Origin: Piromyces finnis finn
Taxonomy: Eukaryota > Fungi > Neocallimastigomycota
Direction: 5' to 3'
Assembly: GCA_002104945.1 (NCBI GenBank)
Contig: MCFH01000042.1
Location: forward strand, 419,119 to 483,118
DNA length: 64,000 nt
Positions 28,511-63,757 of this stretch are shown one piece after another. Position numbers and translations under genes: made by a program. The notes under the pieces were generated by a model. That model saw only the letters and a list, made by a program, of their open reading frames with translations, was not told where the DNA came from and did not search any database. Position 1 is the first letter of the stretch. Each line of letters opens with the position of its first letter.

Positions 28511-30878
28511 TTATTCTTCATCAAAATATTCAATGTCGCCATTAGCTGCTAATTCATCAAGTGCACTTTCATCGAATTCATTATCATCGAAATCATCATC
28601 ATATCCTTCACCATCTATACTTTCTTCTTCATCTTCATCCATAGCAGCAACATTATCTTCAGCTATTATTATTTTATTTTTATTTTTTTTTTTTTTAATT
28701 ATCATCATAATAATATAAAACAAAATAATTATTAATATAGTGGTTGTGTATATTTATACATGATCTAAAAAATTATTATGGGACAACTTTATATTTTTAT
28801 ATACTATGATATATGATATATATCTATTAAAAACAAAATAAATCAATTATTAGGACGTTATGCTTACCTTCTTCATCGTATACAACATCTGCTTCTTGAC
28901 TTACTCTCATTTGGTTACGAGTAACAAACTATACAGTCGGTAGAGAATAAATAAAATTAAATATATATATTTATTTATTTATTTAATTAATACCTATAAG
29001 GTTAAATCTATTTTCATTTTTCTTATTATACCAAAAATAATAATTACCTGTGAATTAATTAAATCAAGACGACCATTTAATTGTGATAATTTACCCATAA
29101 GGCTTGAACGTTCTTGAAGTAATTGATATAATTCACCAAGTTGAGAAGTTAACTCTGGAACCTAGTAATTTTTTTTTTTTTTGGAAAAAAAAAAAAAAAA
29201 TAGTTTATCAGTGAAATATGTTACATTTTTGCATACACATAATTTCATTTAAAATAATATATAATAATATATATTATATATAGAGTTAAATTTATATAAA
29301 TTAAAATATATATATATATCTATTTACTGAAATAAGATAGGACATATGTATCATAATAGTGTATCTAATCCATTCGAAAATGTAAACACCACGTTGTGGT
29401 TTCTTTTGAATTTTTTCCCTTAATAAATTAAGGAATGGTATAACATATTGTGGTGGAAGTCTTTCCAAGGTATTTCTAATGACTTTAACATTAGTAACGG
29501 CTAAACAAGTTTCCAGTAATTGTTTATCATTACTGTGGACGGCTTGTTGAAGCATATTTTGAATAGATTCACCCTTTGGAATAACTAATTTTTTTGATTT
29601 TGATGGTTCATCTTGTTTACTTGATTTTATTTCCATTTCTTTTATTTTTTCTTCTAAAGTTTTTTCATCTTCAACAGATTTTCCTTCTCCTTCTTCTTCT
29701 TCTTCTTCGTCAAGTAAAGACATACTGACCATAGTACTTGCCTTGGATTGAGTTACAGTAGCAGCAGCCTTTTTACTATCTTTTCTAATTTCACTTTGAA
29801 GTAAATTGGTAATAAGAGATCTGGATAATGAAATATCTTCTTTAAATTCACCACTTTCTAAAGTTAAATCAGAAATAATTTCGAATTTTGGTCTTACCAT
29901 AGATCCATAACCAACTAAAATTTGACATTCTCCTGGTTTAGAGGATTCAATGAAAGTAGCAAACATAATATTTAATAATTGTTTTTCTTCTTCTTCATTT
30001 TCCTTTTCATCTTCAAAATTGTAGTAAATCTTTAATTTGGAATCAAATCCTTTTGTTAATATCTTTTGTCTCTTTTTCTTGTCGGTATTTTCTTGAGTGG
30101 AAGACATATTATTCCAGAGATATAATACACCATCTTCACCGATAGCTAAAACATTATTATTTGAATTGACACTAACAGAAATTGGCATGGTATCCATAGT
30201 TAAAGCTGAAACTGTTTTTCCTTTTTCATTGTTATCCGTTTGACCCCAAATAGAAATAAATCTATCTTGATCAGCAACAGTGATAAAAGTATCATCATTT
30301 GAAAGGGCAACTTGACGAATATCAGTAGCATGTCCTGGGAAAGTCTTTAACAATAGTGTTGATAATAATTAAAAGTAATAAATATATTAATAGAGAAATT
30401 TAGAATTTTATGACCATTTATGATGAAAATGAGTACAAAATCATCATCGTCATCATCATCATCATTATAATCCATTAATTAATATTATTCCGTTCAACTT
30501 ATTTTATAAATCCATTGAACTAAATATGCATTGCAAAATAGATAGATAGATAAACAATAGGAAAAATAATATAATTTTTTATTTTTTTTTTTTTTTACCT
30601 TTACTAAAGACTTGGATTCTAAGTCAAATAAACTAATAGATTGACCAGCTACATATAATTTCTTATTATCATTGGAAATATTTAACTTTGAAACAGAATC
30701 AACACCGCTTAACCATTTACTGTTGATAAAGCGAAATATCGATGTAATTAAGAAGAATTATAATTTCAAAAAATAAAATAAAAATTTATAATTAATAATT
30801 TTATAATATATTCAAAAATAAATTTTTAAAAAGAAATAAATAATTCAAATTTAATGTTAATAATAAATTAACGTTAAA

Positions 30879-46849: not shown

Positions 46850-47509
46850 ATGGAAAGTAATAATAAAAATAATACATTGGTAATAACAACGTTGGAATCA
46901 TTAAAAGATTATTGTAATGTTTCAAAAGAAGTTCTTATAAATTCACTTCAAAAACTTGAAAAAAAAATATTTCCAAAAAATGAACAAATGGATATTTCAA
47001 CCGAAGTTAAAAAACGAACCAATACATTGGTTATAGCAATAACCTTAAATACACCTTCCACTTCAGATACCGTTAAAGCAACAACAACAACCGAAAATAA
47101 TTATACCCAAGAAAAAAATAAATTAAAAAATAAAAGAAAAAGTAAAGGAAATTTAAAAAATAATAATAGTAGTGGTCTAGTGAATTTCAATAAAAAATCA
47201 ACAACCGAAATCAATAGTAATAAATATTTTGTTGTTGGATATCTTATCTATTCAAAAAAGGATTCTATAATTAAATTTGCTGTCGATCCTTCTAAAAGAA
47301 ATCTTGGTACTGGTTGGAAATTACTTTCTTATTCAATGGAACGTATGACAAATCAAATGCCAAAAGGTCATAAAATAAATTTAGCAGTAGATATTAGTCG
47401 ACTTCCTGCACAACATTTATATTCTAAAGTTGGCTTTAAAATTAAAGAACAAATTGATAATTATTATGAACCAGGAAGACATGCTTATATTATGGAATAT
47501 TTTGTATAA
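46850..47509 (+). CDS. GNAT acetyltransferase, RimI/Naa-like, intronless
   Basis: Motif A KFAVDPSKRNLGTGWKLL, motif B AQHLYSKVGF, and C-terminal NYYEPGRHAYIM. Confidence 0.85.
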   Translation: MESNNKNNTLVITTLESLKDYCNVSKEVLINSLQKLEKKIFPKNEQMDISTEVKKRTNTLVIAITLNTPSTSDTVKATTTTENNYTQEKNKLKNKRKSKGNLKNNNSSGLVNFNKKSTTEINSNKYFVVGYLIYSKKDSIIKFAVDPSKRNLGTGWKLLSYSMERMTNQMPKGHKINLAVDISRLPAQHLYSKVGFKIKEQIDNYYEPGRHAYIMEYFV

Positions 47510-51800: not shown

Positions 51801-52929
51801 AATACGAAGCAACCGGCTATGGTAATCCATCTATTATTGATAGCAATGATGAATGGCGTATTGATGTTATTGGTGCTAGTAAGGGACAACCTGTTCATTC
51901 CATTACATCTAAATTCCGTTTAATTCATGTTAACAATAAATGTGCCTTATTTAGTCACACTGTTAAACTTCCAGATTGGGCTTTCTCTCAACAAGAAGTT
52001 ACTTGTGGTAAAGGAGCTTTAAAGAAGAATACCATTTGGCTTTTCGAAACTAGTCAAAATAAATTCTGTAATACATTTTTTATATTATATAACAAACAAA
52101 AAAAAAAAAAAAAAAAAAAAAAACATACCTATAAATTCTATATATATATATTTTTTTTTTTCACTCCATAGACAATAAATTCCAATTTTTAAAAAAAAAA
52201 AATTCGACAAACTAATTTATATTTATTTATATATATACAATAATTTGATGCACAGTACCAAAAAATACAGAAAAAATTACATACAACAGACCAGGTTTTA
52301 TTAAAAAGTTTATTGAATTAAATACTGTGATGTGGAATGTTAATAAGGGATTAACCAGTTCACATCCTTATGAAAGTCATCCATCCTCCTGGTTATTCTT
52401 AAGAAGAGGTATTAGTTTCTGGACTGGTAAAAAAGATTATGTTGGTAGAATTTACTTAATTGGTAATCCAGTTTCATGGTATTTGGGTGCTGCTGGTGTT
52501 ATTTTCTATATTGGATTCTTTGCCATGACCCTCTTCCTTCAACAAATTCAACGTAAGAATAAGATATTCGATATCAATTCAACCTATTTCAGTAAGGGTG
52601 GATTATTATTCTCAGCATACTTTTGGCATTATTTCCCATTCTTTGTCATGGGTCGACAACTTTTCATTCATCATTACCTTCCATGTGTTTATATTTCCAT
52701 TATTCTTTCCATGATTTCGTTAGAAACACTCATTAAATATGTAAGACCAGCAAAAATCGTAATTCCAATCCTTATTGCTTGTTTATCTATCTTTACCTTT
52801 TTCTACTTTTCTCCATATACCTATGGTACTTTTATGACCACTAAACACTGTGAAAGAATGAAATTGCGTAAAACATGGGATTGGGATTGTAAATACTATG
52901 ATAAGAATGCTCATAAATTAAAAAAGTAA
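48833..52929 (+). CDS. PMT1: Dolichyl-phosphate-mannose protein O-mannosyltransferase (GT39), PMT1-like, multi-exon
   Basis: VVFDEVHFGGFANKY..FFM|DVHPPLAKLL, MIR domains (GGFLHSHGSNY.TGSKQQQITCY, RRLHSH, FRLIHV), SSHPYESHPSSW, YLIGNP, HYFPFFVMGRQLFIHHYLP. Subfamily call rests on FFMDVHPPLAK. Confidence 0.93.
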
Positions 52930-53651: not shown

Positions 53652-55977
53652 AAAATGGCATCTTCTTCTTCTTCCTTATTATCGGCGGTGATGTATTATT
53701 ATTTCAGATAAAAAAAGTTTATAATAATTAATCTCTTTTTTTTTTTTGTGTGTGTTAATTAATAAATAATAGATAATCTTACTATATTTAAAGATACTAT
53801 TATAATAATTTTATAATAAAAAAAAAGCATCATCTACCATGTAATAGTCCTATTAATTTGATGTATTAGATAGTTATGACCATACTGAACCTAATAATCT
53901 TTCTTTAAATCCTTATAGACTATATTCATTCTCTCTTCCTCTGCCTTGATTCTTTTCTTTCTTTCTTTTTCATATCATTTTCCTTTTTCCTTTTTTCCTT
54001 TTTTTTCCTCTTTCCACCGATCAATCTAATAAAAAATTTTTATCTTTCAATTGAGTAATTTTATATATTTACAATATATTCATAATATATTCATAATATA
54101 TGATATGTAATCTATTGCGTAGTAGGAAATTGTTCATGAATGTATTTGTTCATTCATATATTAAATTAAATTAATGAAATATATTTTATTATATTGTAAT
54201 ATATTGATGCATTTGAATTACCAAAGAATTTCATATCAAAAAAAATAAAAAAAAATGAAAAATGAAAAAGCTTTTTTGACTTTTTTTTTTTTGTTACTTT
54301 CAAAAGTATTCATTTGTTATCAAAAGAAGTTAAAAAAGAAAAAAAAAATTTTTTTTTGTATTTTAAAAGAATTGTATTTTCTTTTTTTTTTAATTGACTT
54401 TTGTTGTTGATGGTGGTGGTGGGTGGTAATGATGGTAATGATGATGATGGTGGGTGGTGGTGTTATGGTGGTATTAAAAAAGAAAATTAGGTTATTTTTT
54501 ATTTATTTATTTAAATAATGCTCCAATTTTCATTGTGCCTTAATATTCCTATCTTCATCTTACTATTGTGGTGATGGTAGTTGCTGTTGCGGTTATTACA
54601 TTAAATAATAGTGTTATTGTACATTTGTTAAAAAACAGTTGCCAATATTTTTTCAATAAAAGAATTTTTTTTTACTTTTTTTTAATGTATGTACCTAAAA
54701 TAATGTAAGAAAAAAAAAAGAAAAAACAGATTTGTAGGTTGACGGTTAATTAATAAAATCAATCAATAGTCATTATCATCATCATCATCCTTCATAAAAG
54801 AATATAATTTTTTATTCTGGTCTTCAAGTCCATATAAAAAAAAATACTTTGATTTTCTCTTTAAAAATGGATACGTTTTAACTATATAATAATTAATGTT
54901 TTATTTCTTTCTATTCTTCACTTGTTTTACCTCTTTCCCTTCCTACCTTTTACCTTTTTTCTTGCTATTCCTATTCTTCTTCTTCCTACGAAAATTAAAC
55001 CTTTTTTTTTTTATTATTATTATTATTAAATTGATAAAAAAAAATTTTTTTTTTTTTCTTTTCTATTATTTATTATTAAAAATACTTTTTAAATTTTTTT
55101 ATATTAAAAATTTATCATTTTTATTATTAATTTAATCATTTTTTTTTTATATTTTATTAATTATTTATTATACTAAAAAAAATTCTTTTTTTTTTTTTTT
55201 ATAGAAAAAAGTTCAATTAATTGTTTAAAAAAAAAAAAGAAAGAAAAAAAAATAAACAATTAAACCTTTCTTTTATTAAACTTTTATTATTTTTATATTA
55301 AATAAAATACATAAGTAAATAAAGAAATATTCTTTTTTTTTTTTTAAATATGAGATAAATGAAAAAAAAAAATTTAAAAGAGAAATAGTTAAAGTGAAAA
55401 TAAATAGTATAGAATTAACCTTTAAATAAATATATACAACTCAATTAAAGATAAAAACAGGAATATAAAAGATACAATGAAAAATATATATCTATTAAAT
55501 TTACCTATGAAATAATATATTTTACAAAAAAAAAAAAAAAGAGTCTTTATAATTTGTTTGTTTAATCGATTAAAAATTAGTTTATATGCAATTTATGTAT
55601 ATACACCAATTTCTTTAAAAAAAAAAAAAAGAAAAAGAAAAACTTTAAAAAATATAAATCTAATTTAATAGAAAGATCAAATAGAGTATACAAAAAATTA
55701 TATATGACAAAAAAAAAGGAATAGAAAAGAAAAGTGTAACTAAAAATAATCATCATATATATATCGAATAATATAAAATTATAATAGTATATATATTAAT
55801 GTTTTAAACATTTCAAATTTCAAAATTAGTCCATCAAATAATAATAGATAATCCTATAATTTTTTTTTCAACTTTTTTACCTATATATATGAATAGTAAT
55901 TTATATTTTTAAAAGTGTGAATATTAATTTAAATATTAATTTATTTTATAATATAAATATTTATTATAGTCATCATA

Positions 55978-58900
55978 ATGATTAAGGAAACTTTACGTTT
56001 TGATGAACGTGTAGTAGTCATTACCGGTGCCGGTGGTGGTAAATATGAAATTTATTATATTATTATTAATTTTGGAAGGGAGAGAAAGGAAATATAAGAT
56101 ATTTATATTTATTTAAATATTTTCATTTATATTGTAATTCCTTTTTTTTTTAATGTAACATTCATTTTCACTTGAAATTCAATTAAAAAAAAAAAAAAGG
56201 TTTTGGTCGAGCCCATGCCTTTTTATTCGCTTCTCGAGGCGCAACTCTTGTTTTAAATGATAATGCTATTATTTCAAATAATAATGGTCAACCAAAATAT
56301 TTAGTTGATGATGTTGTTAATGAAATTACTAAAGCTGGTTTCCATGCCATTGCTAACTATGAACCAATTGAAAACGGAGATAAGATCATCGAAGCTGCTA
56401 TGAACGCTTTCGGAAGAATTGATATTTTAATTAATAATGGTAGGACCAATACTATATTTTTTTTTTTTTTTGGAAAAAAAAACATTTATATCCATAAGAC
56501 TATCCTTTTTTATATCTATTAATCATTAAACAATTTATTCTTTTTATTGTTAATATTATTATTTATTATTGTGTCAATAATAATTTCGCTCAAACAAATT
56601 CTCGATAACTATTTAAAAAAAAATGCCAATATCCTTAACAACACAAACAACACCACCACAAAAAAATAATTTTTAAAAAAAAAACTTTTTTTAAATTATA
56701 GCTGGGTAATTTTCATTTTCTAAAATTTAAATATAGAATGCAATACTCTATATGACTATTCAATAAGTTATAGAGTAAAAAAAAAAATATTGACATTTAT
56801 TAAAATCTTTAATTTAAATATTCAATCTATATAAATAATTAGTGTTACTTGCAATAAGCCATTCAATGAAATGTCAGATAAGGACTGGGAATATGTACAA
56901 AGTGTCAATCTTCGTAAGTTTAATACTCTAAATAATTATTAAATTTAAAATCATCTTTTATACAAATATCAGATAATGTGTATATATTAATAAATAAATA
57001 ATTTAAATAATAAAAGATGGTGCCTACAAGGTTACCAAGGCTGTCTGGCCAATTATGCAAAGACAAAGATATGGTAGAATCATTAATATTGTTTCTGCTG
57101 CTGGTCTTTACGGTAGTTACGGTCAAGCTAATTATTCTTCAGGTATAATATAAATTTTATTAATATTGTAGTAATTGAAGAATAAAAATTTATGGCAATT
57201 TATTATACTCTACCTTTTAACATTATTTCTAAAAATACTCTATATTTTACAAATTTAATTTATAATGAAATGGATGAATTCGTTCATTCAACACTTTAAA
57301 TAACCTCATCCTGACCAAAAAATTAATGAATATAAATATGACCTTTTCAAAAAATAATCAACGAAATCAACCATTCTAAACATGTTGCCCCTAATAAATA
57401 ATCAATGAAATCCGTAAATATGAAAATGCTGTTCCTAATTATCAATGAAATACATAAATATGAATACGTTGTTTCAAATAAAATCATTGAATATCAATCA
57501 AATTTTATCGTTTATAGCCAAGATGGCTTTACACGGATTCACTTTATCTTTAGCTAGAGAAGGTTACAGATACAACATTTATTGTAATTGTGTTTCACCA
57601 TACGTTGCCTTAAATTATGATGCTTCTATTAAAGATAAATCTGTTCAAGTTGTCAAGCCAGAATTCTTATCCCCACTTTTAGTTTTCCTTACCCATGAAA
57701 ATACCAGAGAAAATGGTTCTCACTTTGAAGCTGGTGCTGGTTATATTGGTAAGTTAAGATGGGAAAGATCTCAAGGATCTGTATTTAAATCCGGTGAAAC
57801 CTTTACCCCAGGTGCTGTTGCTGCCAAATGGAATGAAATTAACGATTTCAATCAAAGTGACTATCCAACTTCTGCTTTAGATAACGATTGGTTCAGACTC
57901 TTAGAAAAGTCTGTTGCTATGCCATCTAACAATGAATCCATTGGTGAATTATCCTTCAAGGGTAGAGTTGTTATTGTTACTGGTGCTGGTGGTGGTATGT
58001 TTTTTTTTTTTTTTAATCCTTTTGATATAATAAATAGTAAAAAAAAAAAAAGTCAAATAGTACTAATTTTTTAAAATTATATTTATATTTTTTTTCTATA
58101 ATAAATAAAATAAAAAAAAATCATCAATACCATTATTTACATTATTCAACTCCATGATCCGTCATATGTCAATAACACAATAACTCTGTTTATATTATTC
58201 AATTCCATAATACATCGCCTACTAATAACACAACTCTGTTTATATTATTCAATTCCATAATACATCGCCTACCAATAACACAACTCTGTTTATATTATTC
58301 AACTCTATAATACATCATATACCAATAACACAACTCTGTTTATATTACTCAATTCCATAATACATGCTAATAATTCAAAAATAATTATACTCTTTCATGA
58401 TAATGAAAAACACATTAATAACTCAAAAATAATTATTCTATAATGAACAATATGTCAATAATACAATAATAATTATATTCACATAATGATATGATTCAAT
58501 TCCATGATATATAATATTACAATAACTATATTTATATAATGATATGATTCAATTCTATGATATATAATATTACAATAACTATATTTATATAATGATATGA
58601 TTCAATTCTATGATATATAATATTACAATAACTATATTTATATAATGATATGATTCAATTCTATGATATATAATATTACAATAACTATATTTATATAATG
58701 ATATGATTCAATTCCATGATATATAATCTATCAATATATTATATATAATATATGAAATTTATTATTTTATTATTATTATTAAATGAAATCCCAACCAACC
58801 CATGAATATATTCAAATTGTAATAATATATTATTAAGGTCTTGGTCGTGCTTACGCCAAGCACTTTGCTAAGTTAGGAGCTTCTGTTGTTGTTAACGATT

Positions 58901-61289
58901 TAGGTGTCCTTTTACGTGGTAGAGGTGCCAATACTCAAGTTGCTGATAGTGTCGTTGAAGAAATTAAGAGTATGGGAGGTATTGCTGTTCCAAGTTATGA
59001 CTCTGTTGAAGAAGGTGAAAAGATTGTTGAAACTGCCATCAAAAACTTTGGTCGTGTTGATGTTATCATTAACAACGCTGGTATTTTAAGAGATAGATCC
59101 TTTGCTAGAATGACCGATACTGATTGGATGATGACCTACAAGGTTCACTTAAAGGGTTGTTACAAGGTTACTAAAGCTGCTTGGCCATACATGGTTAAAC
59201 AAAAGTACGGTAGAATTATTAATATTACATCTGCTGCCGGTCTTTTCGGTAACTTTGGTCAATCTAACTATGCTGCTGCTAAGGCTGGTGTTATTGGTCT
59301 CACTAATACTTTAGCCTTAGAAGGTAAGGAACACAATATTACTGTTAATAGTATTGCTCCAAATGCTGGTACTAGAATGACAGCTACTATTATGCCACAA
59401 GAAATGGTTGAATTACTCAAGCCAGAATACACAGCCCCATTAATTAGTTTCCTTACCCATGAATCATGTACAGCTACTGGCGGTATCTATGAAGTTGGTA
59501 GTTGCTGGATCGCTCGTATCCGTTGGCAACGTAGTGGTGGTGCTTCTTTCGCCATCAACAAATTATTATATCCAGAAAGCATTGCTACCAGATGGCGTGA
59601 TATTATCAACTTTGAAGATGGTCGTGATACCTATCCAACTACTATTGAAGAATCTACTGCTCAAATGCAAGTAAACTTAAAGAATGTTGATAATTCAGCA
59701 GAAAACGAAGAAGAAAAGCAAGTTGCTAAGCAAGAACAAAAGCAAGAAGGCAATGAAGAAAACAACATTTCAAAAATTGATACTGAAGCCCTCAAAAAGA
59801 TTGTATTTAACAAGGAAAAGTTTTCTTACAGTGAAAGAGATGTTATCTTATATTCCCTTGGTGTTGGTATTACCAAAAAGGAACTCTCTTACGTTTATGA
59901 AAATTCTCCAGACTTCAAGGTTCTTCCAACCTTCTCCACCGTTCCAGCCTTAGACTACTTCTCCAAGATGAACCTCTCTAACATATTACCAATCTTTACT
60001 CCAGAAACCTTCATACAAACCAAACACTTTATGGAATTAAAAAAGATTTTCGAACCAAAAGATGTTGTTGTTTCAAAGGGTAAAATTGTTGACATAATAA
60101 AAACAAAACTAGGTGCTGTTTTAGTTACTGCTATATCCACTTATGATCAAGATGATAATGTCATTTGTTATAATGAATTCCACCATCTTCTTCGTCACGT
60201 TGATCACTATGATAACTGTCCAGAAAAGGCCTTAGAATCAAAGATGAATAACACTGTCGTTATTCCAAAGAGAAAGCCAGACGCTATTGTTAAGGAACGT
60301 ACTTCTGAAGATCAAGCCATTCTTTACCGTTTATCTGGTGAAAAGAACCCATTACACGTTGATCCAGCTATGGCTTCCATTGCTGGTTACAATTCACCAG
60401 TTTTACAAAACCTTTGTGTTTTAGCCATCAGTACTCTTCATGTCATTCAAACCTTCTGTTATAGTGATGTTGCTAGTGTTAAGTCTATTCAAGCTGACTT
60501 TGTTTCTCATGTCTTCCCAGGTGAAACTTTACAAACTAATATGTGGCAAGAAGGTACCAAGATCTTATTTACCGTCAAGGCTTTAGAAAGAGATATTGTT
60601 GTTATTTCTAATGCTGCTATCCAACTTCAAGGTCAGGCTATTGCTGGTTTAGCCATGCCAGATCCAGAAAAGAGTTGGTTAACCGTTGAAGGTTTCAAGG
60701 CCTCTAAGATTTTCGAAAAACTTAAGGCTACCTTAGAAGCCACTTCAGGTCCAGAAAGAAGACTCAAAACTAAACAAATAAATGCTGTCTTCCAATTTGA
60801 CGTACGAAATGATAAACGCGAAAGTCAAACATGGTATATAGATTATAAGAATGGTCAAGGTGATATAGGTATTGGTAAACCAACTCACTCAAAACCAGAT
60901 TTAATAATAGCTGCCAGAGATGAAGTTATAATAGATTTAGCTTCAAGGAAAATTACCGGTCAAAAGGCATACATGCAAAGTAAAATTAAGGTAAGCCTAT
61001 TTTTTTTTTTTTTTTTAATCTTTTTATTATTATTATTATTATTATTTCAATCTATTCCTATGTCTTTCTCTGCGCATACACCTACTTACATTTCTATTTT
61101 ATCTCTATTTTATGCATTCCAAATATATTCTATACATTTCATATATTTTATTCATTATATACATTATATTTTTTTATCCATTCCTACTATACATTACATT
61201 TTAATTTATAGTTAAAGGGTAACCATGCTTTAGCCATGAAATTAGATAGTATTCTTGCAGTAACAAAACCAATCATTGCAAAACTTTAA
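55978..61289 (+). CDS. FOX2: Multifunctional enzyme type 2 (FOX2/HSD17B4): SDR-A + SDR-B + hydratase-2 fold + SCP2, C-terminal PTS1
   Basis: Two TGAGG|GLG Rossmann motifs, NNAG motifs, YxxxK (NYSSAK, NYAAAK), [30 protein letters not shown], an SCP2 domain ([26 protein letters not shown]|LKGN..AMKL), and last exon ending ...KPIIAKL* (TAA 61287-61289). Confidence 0.95.
58171..58365. repeat. Intronic 50-bp minisatellite, about 3.8 copies
   Basis: (c/t)aactctgtttatatta recurs at 58181, 58231, 58281 and 58331. Confidence 0.92.
58484..58727. repeat. Intronic 53-bp minisatellite, about 4.6 copies
   Basis: atgattcaatt recurs at 58491, 58544, 58597, 58650 and 58703. Confidence 0.92.
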
Positions 61290-62446
61290 TTTTTTTAAAA
61301 AAATAAAAAATAATAAAAAAAAAAAATCATATATAAATTTCAAAAAATAATTAATTATAAAACGAAAATAAAATAATAATACAAAATACAAAAGAATAGT
61401 TTAAACAAAATTTCAATTTTATAGCTCTATTTAGTAGCAATATAAACAAAATATATATAAATAAGAAAAGAAATTTTTTTTTTTTTTTTAAAAAAAAAAA
61501 TTAATAATAATAAAAAGAAAAATTTAAAGAATAAAAAAAAAACATAAAATAATAAAAAAAAGAAAGAAAAAAATTGTATATGTTTTAAAAATCAACCAAT
61601 AAGAAAAAAAAAAAAAGAAAAAAAAAAGAAAAAAAGAAAAAAAAAAAAGAAAAAAAAAGAAAAAAAGAAAAGAAAAAAAAAAAAAAGAAAAAAAACTTTT
61701 TTTTTTTACCTTTCGTATATCATTCTCATTCTCTTTTGAAATCTAAACTTTTTTTTTTTTTTTTAATATAAAACAAAACAAAAATCTATATAACAATAAT
61801 AATAAATTTTAACATAAAATTAATATAGTAAAAAAAAAAAAAAAAAGGAAAAAAAGGAAAAAAAAAAAAAAAGTAATCATAAAAAGAAAAAAAAAGAAAG
61901 AAAATAGATCATTTTAAATATATAAAAAAAAATAATAAATATAAATGTAATTTTTTTTTCTTCTTCTTCTTCTTCTTTCCTTCCCTTTTCTTCAAAGATT
62001 ACCTTCTACTATGAAAGTTAGTTTAAGCAAATATAATATTTTTTATTATTTATTGGTTTTTCTTTTTTTTTTTTTTTTTTATTTTTATTTTTATTTTTAT
62101 TTTTAATAATACATGATTTTTCTTTCTCTTTTGTTGATACTACCTATTATTATTATTATTTTTTTTTTTTTTTCCTATTTCATCTATAGTATATCAATGG
62201 ATTATTCTATCTATGTTATATACATAGCACCACACATCCTTTTTTTTTTCTATGTAATAATTATCTGTTAAATATTTATTATAAAGGTTTATAAATATAT
62301 AAAGAAATATTAATTATTTTAGTTAATTTATATTAAAAGACTTTTTTTTTTATTATTATTATTATGTGTTTGTAGCTGATGGTGGTTTTTTTGGTAAAGG
62401 ACATTTCATGTTTCTGTTTTCGTTCTTGTTATTGTTTTTTTTTTTT

Positions 62447-63757
62447 TTAATTATTTTCGGTAGAAACATCTTGAACAATAAAGTTATAATATTTCATGGA
62501 AATGTCTTTAAAATTTTGGAAGAATTTTTCTGGACAGTTGTATGGACCGTTTACAGAGAAATAAAAGGTTTCTTTATTATGGAATCCATATAAATTTAAA
62601 AAGTAAAATTGATCATAAACAGCAATTTGATTAGAAAATTGAAGATTATCCATACCAACACCAACTAAACCTAAATGAGAGGTAAAGGTATAATTTGTTT
62701 TACAAGGATCAAGGAATTTGCTATAATTATTCATTGCTTGACCTTGTTCATCGGTTAAATTGGCCGCACTATAACCGGAAATACAGGCTTCTTGAGTATG
62801 ATAGGCTTCTTGGAATTTTTTGGAACAAACTAAAATATTTTCTAATGGATCATCTATTTTATCTACCATTGGATAAAGACTACCAACATGATAATAAAAT
62901 AGAGCCCTTTTAAATAATTCAGTGGCATAGGGATACTTACGATTATCCACTGGACACATCAAAGCAATTGGAATATCATCATATTTTCCTTGATGATATA
63001 CTCTAAGGGCTTCATTTTGAATAGCCATAACAATGGCTTGGGCCGTAACACCATGCTTTCTACAAAAAGTGGAAATTGGTGCATAAGGAACTTCCCATTG
63101 AGGTTGAATAACATGAGATGGTCGAGTAATTGGTGGATTTAATTCAGCATAAATAGCTTTAGAATTAATTTCAGGATCTTGGAAACCTTGACTTGTAATT
63201 TCTTCGGTATACCAACATTTTTTACCAAAGTCAAACACGGCTGGTTGATTACGAAAACTATCTAAACGTTCGGTGAATGGTTCATTCAAGGCTAAACAAT
63301 AGAAAATATCTAAAACATCAAAAGCTCCTCTACCATCAATAATACCATGACATATTCTTACCCTAATTTTTGTTTTTTCTTGTTCGGTTTCACCAATTTC
63401 TACACGCCAAAGAGGAGCTTTGTCAATTTCATACCATTCGGAAAGTTCATCTTCCAACGGGATTTTACCTTTAAGCATTTTTACTAAATTATCAAATTGA
63501 ATTTCGGAATCTTCAGCATACTGGAAATAATGTTGACCTTCTTTGGTAATAATTTTTAAACGTAATGTTGGAAATTCTTTTAAAAGAGTATAATATTTTT
63601 GACGTATATTGTCTATGGCTTGAATTGGTGTAACTTTTGACTTTGGTACAGTACCACTAACAGTAATCCAAGCTGCTAATGGATTATTTTCACTTGAATC
63701 AAGAATACGTAATAATTTTCCACTATCTTCAAAACTAATTTTTTCCATTTTTTCCAT
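62447..63757 (-). CDS. CoA-dependent acyltransferase (condensation / alcohol acetyltransferase-like fold), intronless, 436 aa
   Basis: Catalytic HxxxDG in RICHGIIDGRG, preceded by FPTLRLKI and APLWRV, with ALMCPVDNRK and FTSHLG in the C-terminal lobe. Confidence 0.82.
   Translation of the reverse strand: MEKMEKISFEDSGKLLRILDSSENNPLAAWITVSGTVPKSKVTPIQAIDNIRQKYYTLLKEFPTLRLKIITKEGQHYFQYAEDSEIQFDNLVKMLKGKIPLEDELSEWYEIDKAPLWRVEIGETEQEKTKIRVRICHGIIDGRGAFDVLDIFYCLALNEPFTERLDSFRNQPAVFDFGKKCWYTEEITSQGFQDPEINSKAIYAELNPPITRPSHVIQPQWEVPYAPISTFCRKHGVTAQAIVMAIQNEALRVYHQGKYDDIPIALMCPVDNRKYPYATELFKRALFYYHVGSLYPMVDKIDDPLENILVCSKKFQEAYHTQEACISGYSAANLTDEQGQAMNNYSKFLDPCKTNYTFTSHLGLVGVGMDNLQFSNQIAVYDQFYFLNLYGFHNKETFYFSVNGPYNCPEKFFQNFKDISMKYYNFIVQDVSTENN

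Follow-up and report, generated by a model that had tools for sequence, protein, structure and literature searches.

Gene structure and transcript evidence

The window analysed here covers the end of scaffold MCFH01000042.1 from Piromyces finnis (assembly GCA_002104945.1), namely its last 64 kb (positions 419119–483118 of 483118), and the letters of the two are identical wherever they were compared. The G+C content of the window is ~17–30% throughout. On the forward strand at 55978–61289, ~2.7 kb from the scaffold end, lies an eight-exon gene whose product is identified by its domains and homologues as the P. finnis orthologue of peroxisomal multifunctional enzyme type 2 (MFE-2/Fox2). The predicted protein ends in Ala-Lys-Leu (AKL), and its hydratase site departs from that of aerobic fungi. 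The gene model was obtained by fitting GT..AG introns to 55500–61800. It opens with the ATG at 55978 and closes with the TAA at 61287–61289, and the summed exons measure 3210 nucleotides, which corresponds to 1069 codons plus the stop.

All exons are on the plus strand. Exon 1 (55978–56038) starts with the ATG and runs directly into the Rossmann β1 strand and TGAGGG motif of the first short-chain dehydrogenase/reductase domain (SDR-A), which continues through exon 2 (56200–56439), exon 3 (56843–56913), and exon 4 (57017–57142). Exon 4 hosts the catalytic Ser and the Tyr of the YxxxK motif, and matches Pfam adh_short by itself with an E value of 1.3e-8. The Lys of YxxxK and the end of SDR-A are encoded by exon 5 (57518–57994), in which the second SDR domain (SDR-B) begins with another TGAGGG. 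Exon 6 (58838–60990) encodes SDR-B, the inter-domain linker, the N-terminal hydratase-2 domain, the MaoC domain, and most of the SCP2 domain. It ends in phase 0 with AAG directly followed by gtaagc, and exon 7 (61212–61289) continues in frame after an AG acceptor. Exon 7 contributes the last 25 SCP2 residues and reads GCA AAA CTT TAA at its end, with Ala-Lys-Leu at 61278–61286. Intron 5 (843 nucleotides) is mostly filled by two tandem-repeat arrays at ~58140–58740, with units of roughly 55–60 nucleotides, as seen in the plain sequence.

A seven-exon GT..AG model was rejected because exon 3 then no longer follows exon 2 in frame. The frame is mended by a micro-exon of four nucleotides, CTGG (56702–56705), which is flanked by ag on its left and gtaa on its right and sits within an apparent single intron of 403 nucleotides. 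The micro-exon gives the Ala-Gly of NNAGV, and both the frame after exon 2 and the conserved NNAG motif require it. At this site the annotated P. finnis protein reads NNAGVTC, and the mRNA of a relative (contig L002, positions 466–469) reads AAC G/CTGG/T GTT. That annotated protein is GenBank ORX45061.1 (P0133 in our set; BCR36DRAFT_121226, UniProt A0A1Y1V2T7), which has 1069 residues. Seven of the exon peptides have sufficient length for a comparison, and each is 100% identical to it, exons 1 and 2 covering its residues 1–20 and 22–100, respectively; the micro-exon is too short for such a comparison. Hence, the gene, including its final exon and the AKL end, is already in the public annotation, and the exon itself is not new. 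The initial annotation of this DNA had called the last exon missed, which holds for the bacterial-style list of open reading frames (ORFs) but not for ORX45061.1; its guess that the host is an anaerobic gut fungus is borne out by the peptide identity, P. finnis being a member of the Neocallimastigomycota.

Splicing was inspected in transcript contigs of close relatives. Eight intron-free contigs hold the complete ORF, the letters of the micro-exon, and the last junction, and they are colinear with the window exon by exon. Six of them (L002–L007) are JGI contigs of 3.4–3.6 kb from one close relative with an unbroken ORF of 3210 nucleotides; this relative shares ~94% amino acid identity with P. 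finnis over exon 6 and 89–95% nucleotide identity. The other two (L008 and L009) are Logan contigs with an unbroken ORF of 1062 residues, directly after which comes poly(A). The last junction in these contigs reads AAAATTAAG/TTAAAGGG, also written AAAATTAAG/TTAAAGGGTAACCA, which equals the predicted splice, and the ORFs end in AKL plus stop. The gene is thus intact and expressed in close relatives. For P. finnis itself, an exact look-up of the protein returned the genome scaffold only and no P. finnis transcript contig. Four runs from a single organism contained 0.53–0.59 of the words sampled from 55800–61500, compared with an exon share of 0.56, a figure that involves no aligned reads and is suggestive only. 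As to the last intron, whose splicing the initial annotation had wished to see confirmed by RNA sequencing, the predicted splice is seen in the relatives' transcripts.

Family and domain architecture

The protein has the domain order SDR-SDR-hydratase2-SCP2. Pfam matches to adh_short reach 1e-44 for SDR-A, where they are spread across exons 2–5, and 5e-41 for SDR-B. The remaining matches on exon 6 are MFE-2_hydrat-2_N (PF22622, 9e-29) at ~59821–60195, MaoC (PF01575, 3e-23) at ~60265–60609, and SCP2 (2e-12) at 60745–60990. Both SDR domains retain the glycine-rich motif and the Ser...YxxxK signature, with TGAGGGFG and SAAG...YSSAK in SDR-A and TGAGGGLG and SAAG...YAAAK in SDR-B. Exon 6 alone matches the SCP2 profile (PF02036) with 47.8 bits over profile positions 8–85 of 101. 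When the last exon is included, in the identical stretch of ORX45061.1 (residues 940–1069), the score increases to 73.2 bits and the match spans positions 7–100 of 101. The last exon therefore completes the SCP2 domain and is no chance ORF. Its description in the initial annotation, as an exon ending in AKL and a stop after an SCP2 domain, is confirmed by the in-frame reading, the SCP2 profile, and the identity to ORX45061.1.

The closest relatives in a word-based protein search are Neocallimastigomycota orthologues with 80–88% identity. The named homologues that come next are fungal Fox2 proteins or 'peroxisomal hydratase-dehydrogenase-epimerase' with 44–50% identity, 100% query coverage, and E = 0. 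They stem from chytrids, Blastocladiomycota, Glomeromycotina, Umbelopsis, and others, and many have ~1050 residues and an SCP2 end. Beyond the clade, no named homologues are closer than the SCP2-bearing Fox2 proteins of these groups. The Fox2 proteins of Mucorales, Zoopagomycota, and Dikarya have ~900 residues and no SCP2 domain. The layout of dehydrogenase A, dehydrogenase B, hydratase-2 double hot-dog, and SCP2 is ancestral for early fungi. Sequence matches in the PDB comprise Candida tropicalis 2ET6 (5e-178), Drosophila 3OML (3e-128), 1S9C (5e-50), human 1ZBQ, and 1PN2, and the SCP2 part matches 1C44, 1QND, 2C0L_B, and 1IKT at 1e-9 to 1e-13. The Pfam domains, the PDB matches, and the Fox2 homologues at E = 0 all agree with the family assignment, MFE-2/FOX2 with SCP2, made beforehand.

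The copy number differs within the clade. In Neocallimastix, two or more different full-length copies occur per species (for instance P0121 and P0123 in N. 'constans', P0122 and P0128 in N. lanati), and GenBank lists one of those from N. californiae as 'Fox2 protein' (ORY54017.1). For P. finnis, one copy only was seen in the homologue cluster.

The C-terminal AKL signal

The AKL end encoded by exon 7 fits the canonical pattern [SAC][KRH][LM] of the type 1 peroxisomal targeting signal (PTS1). We compared 16 sequences of anaerobic fungi, which come from Neocallimastix californiae, N. lanati, N. 'constans', Anaeromyces robustus, Piromyces sp. E2, P. finnis, metatranscriptome contigs, and Logan contigs. 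AKL is terminal in all 16, and 15 of them share the last ten residues. The initial annotation had read AKL as an intact PTS1 and named its conservation in related genomes as a test; the canonical pattern and its recurrence in every sequence compared are in line with that reading.

Outside the anaerobic clade, a canonical ending is found in 94 of 113 homologues (SKL in 53, AKL in 32, and AKM, SKM, SRL, or ARM in the rest). An AKL/SKL ending is therefore ancestral to the family, and the signal in gut fungi reflects retention instead of gain. The codons of the tripeptide differ synonymously, being GCA AAA CTT in P. finnis, GCT AAA CTT in L002, and GCT AAG CTT in L008, and the SCP2 part has a synonymous divergence (dS) of 0.24–0.99 within the clade. 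That AKL is kept despite these codon changes and this divergence indicates that the tripeptide is held by selection. At the other end of the protein, the Rossmann strand and TGAGGG open the sequence just where they do in aerobic orthologues. The C-terminal PTS1 is the only recognisable targeting signal.

A remodelled hydratase-2 site

The hydratase region was inspected by aligning eight sequences of anaerobic fungi with 33 Fox2 proteins of aerobic fungi, and human residue numbers were carried over from the alignment to 1S9C. The human hydratase-2 signature considered here consists of D510, H515, H532, and G533, of which only the H515 equivalent is unchanged in P. finnis. The position of the catalytic Asp (human D510) is occupied by Glu828 (GAA, 60340–60342, plus strand), so that SGDxNPLH becomes SGEKNPLH with the motif His (human H515) kept. 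This position is Asp in 33/33 aerobes; among the anaerobes it is Glu in five of eight sequences and Asp in three. The adjacent pair Gln850-Asn851 (60406–60411, plus strand) replaces the His-Gly that all 33 aerobic fungi have at human H532-G533. All eight anaerobic sequences have Gln followed by Asn or Ser here, giving VLQN or VLQS instead of ILHG.

The N-terminal hydratase domain is altered as well. Its LHGEQ motif reads IQTKH in P. finnis, with QTKH at 60016–60027 (plus strand) in place of the HGEQ found in 33/33 aerobic fungi (human H406–Q409) and with Ile in place of the preceding Leu (human L405). QTKH occurs in seven of the eight anaerobes. In the human enzyme, the mutations D510Y, H532R, G533R, and L405P leave no detectable hydratase activity, the first three cause type II deficiency, and the residues D510, H532, G533, and L405 are 100% conserved among 30 eukaryotes (PMC5471156).

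Change and selection across the domains

We then counted columns that are near-invariant in the 33 aerobic fungi and changed in at least five of the eight anaerobic fungi. Such changes affect 4 of 98 near-invariant columns in SDR-B, which is almost untouched and the best-conserved part of the protein. They affect 27 of 97 columns in SDR-A, where for example NNAGILRD becomes NNAGVTCN (56843–56860 region), 14 of 27 in the N-terminal hydratase domain, and 14 of 41 in the C-terminal one. In a maximum-likelihood tree with six anaerobes, the stem of the anaerobic clade measures 0.62 changes per site, any other inner branch is at most 0.22, and the branches within the clade are 0.015–0.087.

The ratios of nonsynonymous to synonymous rates (dN/dS) of all domains are 0.03–0.09 against L002 (close) and 0.06–0.16 against L008 (distant); those of the hydratase-like domains are 0.05–0.16. 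The inter-domain linker alone is relaxed, with dN/dS of 0.39–0.52. Every domain is under strong purifying selection within the clade. Tree and column counts point to a burst of change when the anaerobic lineage arose, mostly in the hydratase and dehydrogenase A parts, followed by conservation, which is the pattern of a maintained and not of a decaying gene.

Genomic surroundings

Between the gene and the next downstream ORF lies a long A-rich and AG-rich low-complexity tract at 61440–61700. That ORF (62447–63757, minus strand) encodes 436 residues and has no Pfam match. The neighbouring ORF at 52327–52929 (plus strand) encodes the C-terminal part of a protein O-mannosyltransferase (PMT_4TMC, 4.5e-49), and other neighbours encode a GNAT acetyltransferase and a WD40/Utp12 protein (46850–47509, plus strand, and 29301–30353, minus strand, respectively). 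No peroxisome-related gene was found among the neighbouring ORFs checked within the 64-kb window.

Comparison with known enzymes and organelles

The P. finnis protein shares with the Fox2 enzymes of C. tropicalis and Saccharomyces cerevisiae (2ET6, 1PN2/1PN4) the tandem NAD-dependent (3R)-hydroxyacyl-CoA dehydrogenase SDRs with TGxGGG and Ser...YxxxK, the hydratase-2 double hot-dog, and a C-terminal PTS1. It differs from the yeast and Mucorales proteins by the extra C-terminal SCP2 domain, and from the C. tropicalis and S. cerevisiae enzymes by the replaced equivalents of D510, H532, G533, and LHGEQ and by its strictly anaerobic host. The SCP2-bearing Fox2 proteins of aerobic early-diverging fungi (Batrachochytrium, Allomyces, Rhizophagus) have the same four-domain order, ~1030–1070 residues, and AKL, SKL, or AKM ends. 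All of them retain SGD..NPLH, ILHG, and LHGEQ, whereas the anaerobic clade has changed these motifs.

Human HSD17B4 (D-bifunctional protein; 1ZBQ, 1S9C, 1IKT) likewise combines a dehydrogenase, hydratase 2, and an SCP2-like domain, but has one SDR domain where the P. finnis protein has two. It also ends in AKL. At human D510, H532, and G533, where mutation abolishes hydratase activity (PMC5471156), the gut-fungus protein naturally carries other residues.

Anaerobic peroxisomes have been described for Mastigamoeba, Entamoeba, and Pelomyxa, and are reported to lack β-oxidation enzymes and catalase (PMC8887013; PMC8629394). The likeness to these organelles of Archamoebae would consist in a peroxisome-derived compartment in an anaerobe that is served by PTS1 import. 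Different from the Archamoebae, in which all β-oxidation enzymes are reported to be absent (PMC8887013), P. finnis retains an MFE-2 with a PTS1. For gut fungi, transcripts matching peroxisomal import machinery were reported in P. finnis and two other species, and the existence of peroxisomes was left unclear (Seppala et al., 2016; PMC5168858). The portions of the supplement of that study which were searched hold no entry for a multifunctional enzyme, SCP2, MaoC, acyl-CoA oxidase, or thiolase. Beyond one sentence in the same paper, a full-text literature search of incomplete coverage returned nothing on peroxisomes of Neocallimastigomycota, and the peroxisome literature that it did return does not mention this phylum.

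Proposed role and alternative explanations

Taken as a whole, the observations are best explained, in our view with moderate confidence, by an MFE-2 that, in anaerobic gut fungi, Pex5 would import into an organelle derived from the peroxisome and independent of oxygen, and that would have changed its job there. It is probably a repurposed peroxisomal enzyme and not a classical β-oxidation step. The classical hydration step of O2-dependent β-oxidation would no longer be carried out, as suggested by the replacement of invariant, essential hydratase positions on the long clade stem while dehydrogenase B was left almost untouched. In yeast, dehydrogenase B is the short-chain-preferring domain. The most likely role of the P. 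finnis protein would be the NAD(H)-linked interconversion of (3R)-hydroxyacyl-CoA and 3-ketoacyl-CoA, with the hot-dog and SCP2 parts serving as acyl- or lipid-binding and scaffold modules; alternatively, the hot-dog part may be a hydratase with altered specificity. The purpose would then be lipid remodelling or redox balance instead of fatty-acid combustion. A non-oxidative role had been put forward in the initial annotation, and the clade-wide remodelling of hydratase-2 under purifying selection lends it indirect support, while the role itself stays conjectural.

A bolder version of this proposal, which we hold only tentatively and consider rather doubtful, is that gut fungi possess a distinct type of O2-independent peroxisome that keeps a remodelled core β-oxidation enzyme and runs without an oxidase. 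In such an organelle, the enzyme might work in the reductive direction and turn ketoacyl-CoA into (3R)-hydroxyacyl-CoA, whether to dispose of NADH or to elongate chains, or else the rebuilt hot-dog site might act as a dehydratase or isomerase in anaerobic lipid remodelling.

Several observations weigh against a changed job and would suit a classical β-oxidation enzyme that performs both hydration and dehydrogenation, either in a full O2-dependent pathway during micro-oxic episodes or with an O2-independent first step. The four-domain architecture is complete, and the purifying selection on each domain includes the hydratase-like part, where it agrees with retained catalysis no less than with a scaffold. 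The motif His (His515) and the equivalents of E366 (in VYEN), R506, N457, G525, and P529 are kept, and the catalytic Asp persists in three of the eight anaerobic sequences. The replacements are conservative (D to E, H to Q, G to N or S), in contrast to the drastic Tyr, Arg, and Arg of the inactivating human mutations; being chemically mild, they make a working or re-specified hydratase possible. SDR-A, moreover, is changed at 28% of its near-invariant columns and intact only in the Ser-Tyr-Lys and glycine-rich motifs. The proposal is further weakened in that the support for the splice of the last intron comes from transcripts of relatives, and in that the TCDB 3.A.20 matches seen in part of the PMC5168858 supplement include generic WD40 and UBC proteins. 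Nevertheless, we consider a classical enzyme unlikely. Three positions that are invariant in the aerobic fungi and fully conserved across the eukaryotes surveyed in PMC5471156 are replaced clade-wide or in most sequences, the LHGEQ motif is replaced too, and the clade stem is very long. In addition, acyl-CoA oxidase, thiolase, and catalase of gut fungi are not reported in the literature found, although the genome was not searched for them, and the anaerobic peroxisomes of Archamoebae do without β-oxidation (PMC8887013).

The targeting signal also admits other explanations. The protein could be cytosolic, for instance a lipid-binding dehydrogenase, with AKL persisting as part of a conserved SCP2 C-terminus in a lineage without the organelle. 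Since the AKL/SKL end is ancestral to the family, its presence alone is no evidence of use, and whether gut-fungus peroxisomes exist at all has been called unclear in print (PMC5168858). We nonetheless regard a relic signal as highly improbable, because in organisms without peroxisomes one would expect drift in a terminal tripeptide that lies outside the fold, whereas AKL is kept in every anaerobic sequence in spite of synonymous codon changes and the SCP2 divergence given above, and because import-machinery transcripts have been reported (PMC5168858). Import into the hydrogenosome, the well-known metabolic organelle of gut fungi, is the other destination to be weighed. In 1993, anti-SKL antibodies reportedly recognised a protein of the hydrogenosomal fraction in Neocallimastix. 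The ORF, however, opens at Rossmann β1 and TGAGGG as in aerobic orthologues and leaves no room for an N-terminal presequence, which makes hydrogenosomal targeting unlikely, and with the C-terminal PTS1 as the sole signal we attach hardly any probability to it.

Implications for anaerobic gut fungi

Peroxisomes are usually regarded as oxygen-using organelles. Unlike the Archamoebae, this phylum of strict anaerobes has kept a central β-oxidation enzyme throughout its history. The enzyme keeps its import tag, its expression in relatives, and strong constraint, and in its hydratase site positions that are invariant in aerobes have been rewritten. As the gene and its ending were already public, the finding is of value for its interpretation and as a marker, and adds no new sequence. 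It is the combination that counts, namely a strict anaerobe, a PTS1 that is retained and selected, a hydratase site that has been remodelled, and domains that are all under constraint. The protein offers a concrete marker by which the peroxisome suspected in gut fungi could be located and purified, as well as a natural experiment on the function that MFE-2 may have once the oxidase step has become impossible.

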